From the sequence record MZ475891.1: a stretch of DNA of 64,000 bases; one strand, 5' to 3'. The position numbers and the translations under genes were made by a program. Shown here piece after piece: positions 23,806-29,712 of the stretch (the stretch's first letter is position 1; every line of letters starts with the position of its first letter). The notes under the pieces are model-generated. The model was given only the letters and a program-made list of their open reading frames with translations. It searched no databases and was not told the DNA's origin.

Positions 23806-24190
23806 TCAGTTACGTGATCAATTGACCGAAGCTGAATATGCAGAACTTGAGCGCACGACAGCACGGTCAATCATGGAACAAGTGTGGGCACTACGCGGCT
23901 GGACGGTTAAGCTCGACTGGTGCAACTATATGTGCGACGACGTTGATTGGTTATTCCATGGTAATGAACGTAAAGCACCGGTTGATCACGCTATGCCGAA
24001 TTCTGGTGTTGGCACTAGCATTGAGCAGCATCGCCTTAATGTCGTGTTTACTCCTACTGAGGTTAGCGTTACGAACTCACTGGTAGACAGCCCTGTCACG
24101 GGCACTGGTATGTCACTGCGCTGTGCTTACTGCGCGTGGCTTTTAGAAATCGAAAAACAAAAGGCTGCCAATGCGCTGCAATCTGACTGA
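23792..24190 (+). CDS. Hypothetical protein
   Basis: TTG start after GGAG; overlaps both neighbours. Confidence 0.6.
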   Translation: MSSVNQLRDQLTEAEYAELERTTARSIMEQVWALRGWTVKLDWCNYMCDDVDWLFHGNERKAPVDHAMPNSGVGTSIEQHRLNVVFTPTEVSVTNSLVDSPVTGTGMSLRCAYCAWLLEIEKQKAANALQSD

Positions 24191-24686
24191 ACTGCCTATC
24201 AAACTCGATCAGGCTGAAAACATTATGGGCAGCGTGTTCGCGCTTGCTGCTGGCTCCAAGTCCAAACGCCGTGCTACTGCGGCAATGCTCATTCACTTCC
24301 ATGAAGGCTACCCTACCATTATCAGTAGTGGCGTCAATGGTACTGTGCCTGGTGAGAGCAACGTGTGTGAGAACGAAGACCTCACTCTGACGTTTGCCCA
24401 CGTTACCCACGCAGAAGCTAACTGCCTCAATCGCATGGACGAATACAGTCTGTGGCCAGAAGAAGAGGACATCCTGTTTTGTACTGACAGCCCATGTCCT
24501 GATTGTTTGCAGCAACTCGAATCTGCTGGTGTGCAGACCATCGTTTATGCGCGTGAATACAGACTCACAGAGCACCTGGATAAGTCTGCTATTCGCATGT
24601 ATTGTCTCGATATTGAGAACGTGCGGGCGTCTTTGCTGAAATCTGTAAATCGTATAGACGAAGTGATTGCAACCACACCTACTTAA
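24171..24686 (+). CDS. dCMP deaminase (cytidine deaminase family)
   Basis: SSGVNG, HAEANCL, TDSPCPDC, IVYAREY. Confidence 0.9.
   Translation: MRCNLTELPIKLDQAENIMGSVFALAAGSKSKRRATAAMLIHFHEGYPTIISSGVNGTVPGESNVCENEDLTLTFAHVTHAEANCLNRMDEYSLWPEEEDILFCTDSPCPDCLQQLESAGVQTIVYAREYRLTEHLDKSAIRMYCLDIENVRASLLKSVNRIDEVIATTPT
24643..24650 (+). promoter_or_regulatory. CTGTAAAT motif (putative phage promoter)
   Basis: 53 nt upstream of the 24704 start. Confidence 0.5.
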
Positions 24687-24703: not shown

Positions 24704-25384
24704 ATGATGGACAAGAATCTGACTATTGAGTTTTTTGCTCCCCGTATTGAAGGAAAGACAGTGCATGTTGGACCTAAGCCTGTCGATGCACCTTCATGGG
24801 AAGAGCAAATAGCTACTGTTTCTGGTGAGCCTACTGCACAGATGCGCCAGCGTGCGTTTGATCGCTTGGATAAGGAATTCAAATTCACTATTCAAGACAT
24901 TGCAGATTCTTTGGACTGTCGTGACAACCCTTCAAGTCCTACTGGTCGTATTCAAGACCCGTATCGTCCGCGTTTGCACAACATCAATCTTCGCCCAGAA
25001 CAAGCCGCAGTGTTGCGTGAAGTAATGAGTCCGCCGCGTCATATGGGTGGCCTGCCTGTTGAGTTAATGCAGGGAACTGAGTCTTCTCTTAATGCACGCG
25101 CTCTCTTTGAGCATACCAAAGAGCATTTTCGTAAGGAAGGACCTATCGTCACGATTGATAGTATCCCTGTTGAGTTCACACAGAAAGGTGATGACAGTAT
25201 CGTCATTGCAGAAGATAAAATCGGTCAACAGGCGTTGGGGCGCACGCTTCGTATCGATTATGAATCACGTTCTGACTGGTCGATGAATCGAACCAACCGC
25301 GCTGCAACGCCTGCTAAGAGCCGCAGCAAACTTCGCGCAAAGAGCCGTGCTCAAAAGCAAGCACGCAAGCGCCAAAGAGGATAA
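24704..25384 (+). CDS. Hypothetical protein with basic C-terminus
   Basis: 226-aa ORF; ends KSRAQKQARKRQRG. Confidence 0.7.
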   Translation: MMDKNLTIEFFAPRIEGKTVHVGPKPVDAPSWEEQIATVSGEPTAQMRQRAFDRLDKEFKFTIQDIADSLDCRDNPSSPTGRIQDPYRPRLHNINLRPEQAAVLREVMSPPRHMGGLPVELMQGTESSLNARALFEHTKEHFRKEGPIVTIDSIPVEFTQKGDDSIVIAEDKIGQQALGRTLRIDYESRSDWSMNRTNRAATPAKSRSKLRAKSRAQKQARKRQRG

Positions 25385-25389
25385 TAACA

Positions 25390-25887
25390 ATGAGCGACAT
25401 TAATCAATTACGCCGCAACTGGTTACAGTCTATGGACATTCCCGAAGAGCTGGTGGACAAAGTATGCGGCACAGACATTGAACAGCAAGACCTGTTTGAA
25501 AGTCTAAGCGCACAGCAACAACGCAAAGTAACGATCGGCCTTGCGCTGCTCCATCTGCAAGTGCCTGATGAAATTCGTTTCGATTTGCTCACCAATCATC
25601 TGGACGAGACTGAACGTTTGGTCAAAGAGCAATTCGAAGAACTGGCAGCACGTCTCGTTAATCAAGTGACGCAGACGGGTTCACCGGAGAAGCAATCAAT
25701 GACAGGCGGTGTTCGTTTAGCAATGCTGATGAACATCCTTGGCTTTGATGATACCACGCTACACGGTATCATGTCGAACCCCAGCTTGATGCGTCAGGCG
25801 GGCCTTGTTGCTATGACTGGCCTTCAAGATATGGGACAGAAAATACAGCAACTTTACGACGGAAATAAAAGCAATGAGCCAAAATGA
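25390..25887 (+). CDS. Hypothetical protein
   Basis: 165-aa ORF with GAGG RBS. Confidence 0.7.
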   Translation: MSDINQLRRNWLQSMDIPEELVDKVCGTDIEQQDLFESLSAQQQRKVTIGLALLHLQVPDEIRFDLLTNHLDETERLVKEQFEELAARLVNQVTQTGSPEKQSMTGGVRLAMLMNILGFDDTTLHGIMSNPSLMRQAGLVAMTGLQDMGQKIQQLYDGNKSNEPK

Positions 25888-26011
25888 ATTAGACGATTTC
25901 GACATTCCTGATCTGGACGAAGCTGAGCAACGCGCAGAAGCTAAGCGTGATGGTGGCGGGGAAGTTGTCGAAGCATCTGATGAATGTGAAGGCGGCGCCT
26001 GCAAAATCTAA
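25874..26011 (+). CDS. 45-aa acidic peptide ending CEGGACKI (not in ORF track)
   Basis: MSQNELDDFDIPDLDEAEQRAEAKRDGGGEVVEASDECEGGACKI; fills the gap up to a terminator. Confidence 0.65.
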   Translation: MSQNELDDFDIPDLDEAEQRAEAKRDGGGEVVEASDECEGGACKI

Positions 26012-26014
26012 TTC

Positions 26015-26041
26015 ATGGGGCCTCGTGCCCCATTTCTGTTT
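26015..26041 (+). terminator. Rho-independent terminator
   Basis: ATGGGGC-CTCGT-GCCCCAT followed by TTCTGTTT. Confidence 0.65.
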
Positions 26042-26055
26042 CTCGGAGAGATGCT

Positions 26056-26511
26056 ATGTCTATTTTATATTCCAACCTTACGCCCAATGAGCGTGACAAT
26101 TTTCGTGCGCATATTCACCAGTGGTATCAGTTGAGCACACAGAAGTCTGCATATCTCGATCTGATGGATCGTGTTGATGAAATTCTCGGCAATATTGTCA
26201 TGGAGTTTGCCAACATGCAGGTTGCGGACACTACTCAGATTCGCATCGACCTTGCGCTGGAAGAGTGGGCTGCTAAATATCCTAAATGCATTGCGTTTCG
26301 TGACCGTTCTGCCTTCTGGGTGAAAGTCTCATTCAAAGAGTGGTTGAATAACACAACCCTATATGTGGAGCGTTCTCATTCGTTGCGTGATCTGAGTGCA
26401 GGTACTTGTTATGGCGTTGATGTGGTAGACACTCACGATTGGCCAGATAGTATCTTGGTCAAGACCTACCAAGATATAGAACAACATAAAATTCGACGAG
26501 GTGCTCGCTGA
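26056..26511 (+). CDS. Hypothetical protein
   Basis: 151-aa ORF with GGAG RBS. Confidence 0.7.
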   Translation: MSILYSNLTPNERDNFRAHIHQWYQLSTQKSAYLDLMDRVDEILGNIVMEFANMQVADTTQIRIDLALEEWAAKYPKCIAFRDRSAFWVKVSFKEWLNNTTLYVERSHSLRDLSAGTCYGVDVVDTHDWPDSILVKTYQDIEQHKIRRGAR

Positions 26512-27041
26512 TGGAGATCGGCTATCGCTGTGTCAACTGTCGCCACGTCTATCAAGACATTATCGGCAAGTGTGACTGCAACAACGACAAGTTCGTGTTC
26601 AAGCGTGTTGCAATCATCGACGTGCCTGATGAGGAAGAAAAGATTCCTCAACTGAATGAGCTGCACCATTCGCGCGGCCCTCGTTTCGTCAACTACCGCA
26701 ATGGCAGTTCTTGGAATGGCGTGTACGAGTATCAAGGTCTGCATGAGAACGGTCGTCCTCGCGTAGGTATTCTCGGTAATATGGGTAGCAGCTACGACCA
26801 CGTAGAAATGTCTAAACAGTTCGGTGATCGTAATATGCAGTCTAACTGTGTGTTGGCTGCTGCTAGTCCTGAGTTGCTGGAAGTTGCCTACATGTGCTAC
26901 AACTACTTCAATACGAAGCGCAAGGTACAGGGCAACAGTCCTAAAACTGAAATGCGTATCAAACTAATCGCGCAGGCTATCCATGCTGCGACTGACCTCT
27001 CCGTCTACAAGGAACCGCAAGATGCTCCAGTATCTAAGTGA
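26511..27041 (+). CDS. Hypothetical protein with N-terminal Cys motif
   Basis: CVNC...CDC; GAGG RBS. Confidence 0.65.
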   Translation: MEIGYRCVNCRHVYQDIIGKCDCNNDKFVFKRVAIIDVPDEEEKIPQLNELHHSRGPRFVNYRNGSSWNGVYEYQGLHENGRPRVGILGNMGSSYDHVEMSKQFGDRNMQSNCVLAAASPELLEVAYMCYNYFNTKRKVQGNSPKTEMRIKLIAQAIHAATDLSVYKEPQDAPVSK

Positions 27042-28611: not shown

Positions 28612-29712
28612 ATGACGGGTCCTCTCGATCTCACTAACCCACAGCACTTCGAACTGTACTCGTTGCACAGCGTTGATGCGCAGTACATCAATCTGTGTGA
28701 CGCACTCCTCACGCAGGGTACGCACGAATCTGACCCAGATCGCACTGCCGATACGTGGCATACGCTGATCGGTATTGGCTTCCAGTTGTCTAACACCAAC
28801 ATCGCTTTCCCTGCGCTGCTGTCTAAGCGTGTCAACGTCCGTGCAGCTATCGATGAATCCTGCTGGTTCGCACGCGGTGAAACGAACATCGCAACTCTCG
28901 GTTCTAAAATCTGGAACGAGTGGGCAGATGAAGAAGGTGAGAACGGTCCTATCTACGGCTTCCAGTACCGTAACTGGCCTGACATTAAAGTGTTCAACAC
29001 TGTCGAAGGCATGATTGAGCAGCACATCCCACCAGCGATGATTGAGCGCATCTCGAAAGAGATCAACCGCATGAAGGCGCAGGGCTATATCGAAACTGCG
29101 TTGCCTGATGGTCGCGTGTTGTACGAAGGTTATATCGATCAGTACGCTGATGCACTGCGTCAAATCATGGCGCGTAGTCGTAGCCGTCGCATTCGTGTGC
29201 AAGCGTTCAATCCGGGTTACGTTGGTATGCAGAGCCTGCCTCCGTGCCATACCGAGTTTGAGTTCAACGTAACCAAAGCCACTGCGTATGAGATTGCGCA
29301 GATGGAAGCACGCTCAATGCGCCCTGACGCTGACTCACTGCATATCGTGGTGACGATGCGCAGCAATGATGCACTTCTCGGGCGTCCCTTCAATATCGTT
29401 GGCTACAGCGCCATGCACCAGTTGTTTGCGAAGTGGGCTGGTCTGAACGTTGGTTCGTTTACTCTGAACGTTACCAACATGCACATGTACGATCACCACC
29501 GAGAAGCGTATGCACAACAGCGCGAGCAGTGGCTGGAGCTACAGACGCAGATGCAGACGACAGGTAAACCTGTTGTTTACCCAACTCTCGAAATCACTGA
29601 CGACATTCTGGGCCTGACTCCAGAAGAGCTGCTGGATAACGTCAACGTCGATTGGTTCGAGCTGGTGGACTACTCTCCTAAACCTGCTGTTAAAGGACGC
29701 GTAACCAAATGA
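28612..29712 (+). CDS. thyA: Thymidylate synthase
   Basis: IWNEWAD, GPIYGFQYRNW, SRRI, LPPCH, RSNDALLGRPFN, NMHMY. Confidence 0.95.
   Translation: MTGPLDLTNPQHFELYSLHSVDAQYINLCDALLTQGTHESDPDRTADTWHTLIGIGFQLSNTNIAFPALLSKRVNVRAAIDESCWFARGETNIATLGSKIWNEWADEEGENGPIYGFQYRNWPDIKVFNTVEGMIEQHIPPAMIERISKEINRMKAQGYIETALPDGRVLYEGYIDQYADALRQIMARSRSRRIRVQAFNPGYVGMQSLPPCHTEFEFNVTKATAYEIAQMEARSMRPDADSLHIVVTMRSNDALLGRPFNIVGYSAMHQLFAKWAGLNVGSFTLNVTNMHMYDHHREAYAQQREQWLELQTQMQTTGKPVVYPTLEITDDILGLTPEELLDNVNVDWFELVDYSPKPAVKGRVTK

Follow-up and report, generated by a model that had tools for sequence, protein, structure and literature searches.

The Erwinia phage pEa_SNUABM_13 encodes a 45-residue peptide that, at the level of sequence, is a stand-alone copy of the flexible redox tail of the class Ia ribonucleotide reductase (RNR) subunit NrdA, placed behind an acidic segment specific to its own family. 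The ORF that specifies it is a genuine protein-coding small gene. The peptide may act in trans as a mimic of the host NrdA tail within the electron relay that serves the enzyme, with a supportive role favoured, and we assign this reading a probability of roughly 0.4.

The window analysed here is a 64,000-nucleotide stretch comprising bases 1-64000 of pEa_SNUABM_13 (MZ475891.1), a 264,714-bp jumbo phage whose host is Erwinia amylovora; positions 25300-26600 match that record with 100% identity at unchanged coordinates. The initial annotation described an acidic 45-residue ORF ending in DECEGGACKI, followed by a terminator and lying close to dCMP deaminase and thymidylate synthase genes, and each element of this description is borne out (Table 1). 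The ORF opens with ATG, its acidic product terminates in SDECEGGACKI, the hairpin 3' of the gene folds with an energy of -11.7 kcal/mol (z = -2.7), and both of the named genes are present nearby. The same source called the ORF unannotated, which is incorrect, as GenBank lists it as a CDS for a hypothetical protein (QYW03000.1). No Pfam or NCBIfam model matches the 45-aa product. Overlap of its start with the preceding ORF makes translational coupling of the upstream 165-aa gene and the peptide possible. The thymidylate synthase homologue in this region is itself 366 aa long, and its Pfam match covers residues 24-364 against a model of 266 positions, implying about 75 inserted residues.

Table 1. 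Coordinates of the peptide gene, its surroundings in the window, and related loci in other phages.
Feature	Position	Strand	Remarks
pEaSNUABM13_00041	25874..26011	+	45 codons plus stop; free-standing NrdA-tail family (PHROG 10239 and relatives)
Residues 1-24 (N-terminal half)	25874..25945	+	Acidic; not in NrdA; conserved in the peptide family
Residues 25-45	25946..26008	+	Homologous to the class Ia NrdA C-terminal tail, from RDG to the last Ile
Cys38 codon	25985..25987	+	Aligned to NrdA tail cysteine 1 (C754, alignment numbering)
Cys43 codon	26000..26002	+	Aligned to NrdA tail cysteine 2 (C759, alignment numbering)
Intrinsic-terminator-like hairpin (26015-26033), then T-rich run	26015..26043	+	Follows the peptide gene
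Upstream 165-aa ORF	25390..25887	+	14-nt overlap with the peptide start; without family assignment
dCMP deaminase	24171-24686		
Thymidylate synthase	28612-29712		
Fused proteins, type A			P0127, P0130, P0134
Fused proteins, type B			P0131, P0132, P0140, P0142
Further fused-module locus	L025:4053-4832		
PCH45 nrdB	MN334766.1 124783-125889 (L037:26783-27889)		DUF1653 gene next after nrdB

Peptide and NrdA resemble each other right up to the last residue. E. coli K-12 NrdA (NC_000913.3) ends in DGCESGACKI, and in a BLASTP comparison with this 761-aa protein the ten terminal residues of the peptide align end to end with eight identities (E = 0.001). The features held in common are the Cys-x4-Cys pair, a second cysteine third from the end, the terminal Lys-Ile and an acidic run-up. 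One Alexandra-type member of the family reproduces all ten terminal residues of E. coli NrdA and matches the nrdA gene at 26 of 30 nucleotides, the AGC serine codon among them, and the last eight residues of NrdA from Pectobacterium and Brenneria are exactly those of the pEa_SNUABM_13 peptide. No direct DNA match of the gene to E. coli genomes was found. When a profile built from eleven phage members was compared with all PDB sequences, the best natural single-stretch match was residues 750-761 of E. coli R1 (E = 0.12-0.2), and the profile also matched 1qfn_B, the R1 tail peptide from the structure of its complex with Grx1. A tblastn search of 50,697 phage genomes with the peptide itself recovered the annotated NrdA ends of Colwellia phage 9A and Pseudoalteromonas phage J2-1 over peptide residues 25-45, and alignment with these two proteins places the homology from the RDG that closes the catalytic barrel through to the last residue, their tails being almost equal in length to this peptide segment. 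A short-tailed NrdA like that of these two marine phages is at present the leading candidate for the donor lineage. The redox-tail mimicry that had been noticed in the cysteine-containing terminus is supported and proves longer than the CX4C pair. Across whole databases the E-values for the NrdA likeness are marginal (0.12-2); we nonetheless accept it on account of the exact end-to-end anchoring and the repeated, independent matches to named NrdA proteins.

The peptide also differs from a host NrdA tail in several respects. It is attached to no RNR catalytic domain and is encoded by a phage that lacks the enzyme; the 45-aa product lacks the ten-stranded catalytic barrel (PF02867) with active-site cysteines that defines NrdA. 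Its tail portion is six residues shorter than that of Enterobacterales NrdA, and its 24-residue N-terminal segment is absent from NrdA altogether. NrdA tails are nearly invariant across 120 Enterobacterales clusters, and the variation seen among the phage tails (Gly/Ser and Lys/Ile/Glu/Ser) does not track host NrdA, which weighs against a mimic of the host tail. A role of the N-terminal half as a mimic of the alpha-binding tail of NrdB was rejected, as hhalign detected no similarity between the two. A weak tblastn match of the NrdA C-terminus at L007:42697-42837, considered as a second copy of the tail, lies inside an unrelated ORF and is attributed to chance.

The tblastn search found the peptide in 89 phage records, so the ORF is conserved, and about 80 of these matches are free-standing small ORFs in jumbo phages. 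The free-standing copies occur in jumbo phages that infect Enterobacterales, namely Erwinia, Klebsiella, Dickeya, Serratia, Yersinia, Salmonella and Raoultella, distributed over several unrelated lineages: Alexandra-like, Miami, PCH45, phiR1-37, FBKp24/Siatvirus, Wellington/Kwan and the JA phages. Alexandra, AD1 and Y3, relatives of pEa_SNUABM_13, have been grouped with the Pseudomonas phages PaBG and Lu11 (PMC7412058); there are no Pseudomonas phages among the jumbo phages with the free-standing gene. The hallmark of the family, a small phage protein or C-terminal module that ends in Cys-x4-Cys-x-Ile after a Gly-Gly-Gly-Glu segment, is present in the peptide, which matches PHROGs 10239, 14561, 38753 and 24014 at their C-terminal ends with E-values from 5e-5, the value that supports its family membership, to 0.013. 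Neither a function nor a relation to NrdA is recorded for these PHROGs, and full-text literature searches returned no description of the peptide family.

A HMMER search against 1.84 billion representative sequences yielded 30 true members, in all of which both cysteines are kept and the second stands third from the C-terminus. The spacing is Cys-x4-Cys in 27 and Cys-x3-Cys in the remaining three. Numbered from the C-terminal end, the 27 sequences with Cys-x4-Cys carry without exception Cys at -8, Gly at -5 and Cys at -3; Glu occupies -7 in 23 of them, Lys -2 in 18 and Ile -1 in 26, while position -6 is Gly (17) or Ser (9) and position -4 is Ala (17) or Gly (10). Across nine close genomes, whose surrounding DNA is 95-99% identical, the peptide shows no amino-acid change, and for the final 16 codons the median dN/dS is 0.11. 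Of eleven family members inspected, ten have a hairpin directly 3' of the gene and eight share a Met-Ser/Thr-Gln start. Positions 25946-26011 of the window are 92% identical over 66 bp to positions 200976-201041 of Klebsiella phage Miami, a member of a different lineage that is otherwise unalignable with pEa_SNUABM_13, which suggests either that the small gene has been exchanged between lineages or that it is very strongly constrained. Constraint at the RNA level was rejected as the cause: synonymous changes do occur, and the more distant members have diverged without restraint, so that protein constraint together with codon bias is enough to account for the identity.

The genomic surroundings of the gene offer little that is constant. 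Neighbours on both sides are not homologous between lineages, which rules out a conserved partner gene, and the upstream 165-aa gene is conserved in Alexandra-like phages only. The link to dCMP deaminase and thymidylate synthase suggested by the initial annotation likewise holds within the Alexandra-like lineage, and fails elsewhere because the neighbours differ. In several phages the peptide gene overlaps or abuts the gene upstream of it; the copies in phiR1-37 and FBKp24 stand alone, and some copies have a ribosome-binding site of their own. A +1 frameshift fusion with the upstream ORF was set aside on the strength of the shared start and of the stand-alone copies with their own ribosome-binding sites. 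Neighbouring genes also lack any enzyme family, so the adjacent maturation enzymes expected beside the precursor of a ribosomally synthesised and modified peptide are not found. In Yersinia phage fHe-Yen9-02, gene 166 (L022:2328-2471) is a 47-aa ORF with a hydrophobic N-terminus located 2 nt upstream of the tail-peptide gene, and by BLAST it is not a paralogue of the peptide.

Ten of the 30 representatives are longer proteins in which the complete 45-residue module forms the very C-terminus. It is preceded by N-terminal domains of at least two unrelated types, A and B, neither with a conserved cysteine, and one of the fusions lies in a PCH45-like contig at the place taken by the free peptide in PCH45. 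The N-terminal domains belong to no Pfam or PHROG family. The type B domain is modelled confidently (pLDDT about 90) and finds no fold match in the PDB; the type A model is too poor for fold comparison. Inferring a function from the fused domains was therefore ruled out, there being neither family nor fold to draw upon. In the type B fusion model the module is disordered except for one short, low-confidence helix in its N-terminal half. Neither domain type was found in pEa_SNUABM_13.

Searches by tblastn with E. coli NrdA, NrdB and YfaE and with two phage NrdA proteins gave only chance matches in bases 1-264,000 of the 264,714-bp pEa_SNUABM_13 genome, and a Pfam scan of all 46 of its ORFs of at least 400 aa identified replication proteins and no RNR family of any class. 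The scanned CxxC-bearing ORFs of 55-220 aa in this phage include no match to a thioredoxin or glutaredoxin family. Any RNR-related partner of the peptide must therefore come from the host. The idea of a phage NrdA that is split or has lost its tail is rejected, and with it the tail-less phage RNR that the initial annotation had offered as a partner. Other Pfam matches among the long ORFs include a T6SS VgrG3-like C-terminal domain (E = 3e-64), a C5 cytosine methylase, an intein splicing domain, collagen repeats and two proteins with a KMPT-N domain.

RNR content was checked in three lineages, represented by pEa_SNUABM_13, KpZh_1 and PCH45. NrdA and NrdB were not found in KpZh_1 of the Siatvirus lineage, and NrdA was found nowhere in the 212.8-kb genome of Serratia phage PCH45. 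PCH45 does possess a class Ia NrdB that is 80% identical to E. coli NrdB over its full length and has a conserved alpha-binding C-terminus. Host-like NrdB is widespread among phages. Many phiEcoM-GJ1-like phages of about 52 kb infecting E. coli, Yersinia and Shigella have an nrdB of the host-like kind that shares about 74% identity with that of PCH45 and adjoins the endolysin gene at the genome end.

Host thioredoxin 1 and glutaredoxin 1 recognise the NrdA tail. Each turnover leaves a disulfide in the active site, which the cysteines of the alpha tail reduce again; the tail is reduced in its turn by thioredoxin or glutaredoxin (PMC11903788; PMC4078304). Extrapolating from sequence likeness to this relay, the peptide would enter the path from thioredoxin or glutaredoxin through the tail to the active site, either replacing the host NrdA tail or working beside it. 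Host thioredoxin 1 or glutaredoxin 1 would pass electrons to Cys38 and Cys43, and the reduced peptide could then undergo exchange with the disulfide that turnover leaves in the active site of host NrdA. In a supportive role the peptide would keep host dNTP synthesis going as an additional, diffusible tail. Two points lead us to judge such a role more likely than an inhibitory one: having a 264-kb genome and no RNR, the phage depends on host NrdAB, and PCH45, a related carrier, brings a host-like NrdB and no NrdA. The tethered host tail is already at high local concentration, which makes the gain from a free one doubtful. A pure shuttle explains neither the conservation of the N-terminal half nor the fusions to unrelated domains that lack conserved cysteines, and both count against this reading. 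So does the near-absent expression of the phiR1-37 homologue g117, for which mean reads of 3.9, 1.5 and 1.2 (early, middle and late) have been recorded against 34,486 for the adjacent g118; a sigma-70-type promoter is predicted for g117 (PMC4848604 Table S2). With g116, g117 (L021:2456-2611) forms a nearly untranscribed island flanked by a tRNA-Asn gene and by the very strong promoter of g118.

A rival reading is an inhibitory decoy, in which the free tail competes with the host NrdA tail for the active site or for Trx1 and Grx1 and so slows host RNR or drains host reducing power. The mimicry of NrdA fits either role, the additional acidic segment at the N-terminus could serve for docking, and the gene is found among small genes typical of host-takeover regions. 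Such a decoy would resemble yeast Sml1, which reportedly interferes with tail-mediated regeneration of R1. Blocking host RNR nonetheless looks self-defeating for a phage that has a 264-kb genome to replicate and no RNR of its own, and the host-like NrdB of PCH45 points to support of host NrdA; we consider a decoy unlikely. Still less probable is a portable docking tag for thioredoxin or glutaredoxin that is unrelated to RNR and recruits these host proteins to the upstream protein or to fused N-terminal domains. The modular C-terminal position in a third of the representatives, behind at least two unrelated domains, and the overlap or abutment with an upstream gene in several phages are what such a tag would produce. 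However, the upstream genes are non-homologous between lineages, the phiR1-37 and FBKp24 copies stand alone, type A and type B domains are absent from pEa_SNUABM_13, and the fused domains offer no conserved cysteine, known family or recognisable fold.

A role outside RNR altogether, for example metal binding by the cysteine pair and the acidic residues, would make the NrdA likeness convergent. The marginal database-wide E-values leave some room for this, and FeoC-type Fe-S proteins score similarly weakly in the profile comparison with the PDB (E about 0.4). Convergence is an improbable source for a likeness that spans 21 residues including the RDG start, is fixed at the exact C-terminus, extends to codons in common with nrdA and was recovered as NrdA ends independently from two databases. 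Least credible is the view that a phage RNR was lost and that the gene is what survives of its nrdA 3' end, decaying or unexpressed. The near-zero transcript of phiR1-37 g117 and the weak Shine-Dalgarno match before the ATG in pEa_SNUABM_13 are in keeping with decay, but purifying selection, the unchanged peptide in nine close genomes and the invariant cysteines speak against it. The start and the N-terminal half, which is foreign to NrdA, are conserved as well, and the gene recurs in several unrelated jumbo-phage lineages in different contexts, usually with its own terminator. A trans-acting, supportive mimic of the host NrdA tail is the reading we prefer.

A broader proposal, which is possible if somewhat doubtful, is that RNR-less jumbo phages complement the host enzyme piecemeal with a diffusible tail copy that would act in trans, PCH45 contributing NrdB as well. 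If true, this would be the first case of a virus encoding an RNR tail as a separate peptide, and it would reveal a new means of retuning the supply of dNTPs in the host. Re-reduction is the less understood half of turnover in class I RNR, and a conserved natural tail encoded in trans would provide a probe of the mutual recognition between tail, thioredoxin or glutaredoxin and active site. Such a tail would further reveal by what means large phages that lack RNR secure or control the synthesis of dNTPs in the host, and a small-gene family that is labelled hypothetical in about 80 phage genomes acquires a function that can be tested.

The peptide does not belong to the thioredoxin/glutaredoxin superfamily, having no Pfam match, a CX4C in place of a CxxC pair and, in a fused relative, a tail predicted to be disordered rather than a thioredoxin fold. 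Sml1, Spd1, Hug1 and Dif1 are small, probably disordered eukaryotic regulators of RNR that act on the large subunit. The phage peptide resembles them in being small and probably disordered and in its proposed action on the large subunit; these regulators, unlike the peptide, are not copies of the tail and have no redox cysteine pair, and the peptide matches no Pfam family at E up to 1 that would place it with the Sml1 or Spd1 type. A further parallel is found in the T4 NrdC thioredoxin, the glutaredoxin-like NrdH proteins and the solitary phage NrdB, in each of which one component of the RNR system is supplied by the phage, and PCH45 carries both a host-like NrdB and the tail peptide. Whereas NrdC, NrdH and phage NrdB are complete, folded proteins, the peptide corresponds to the mobile tail of the alpha subunit only.
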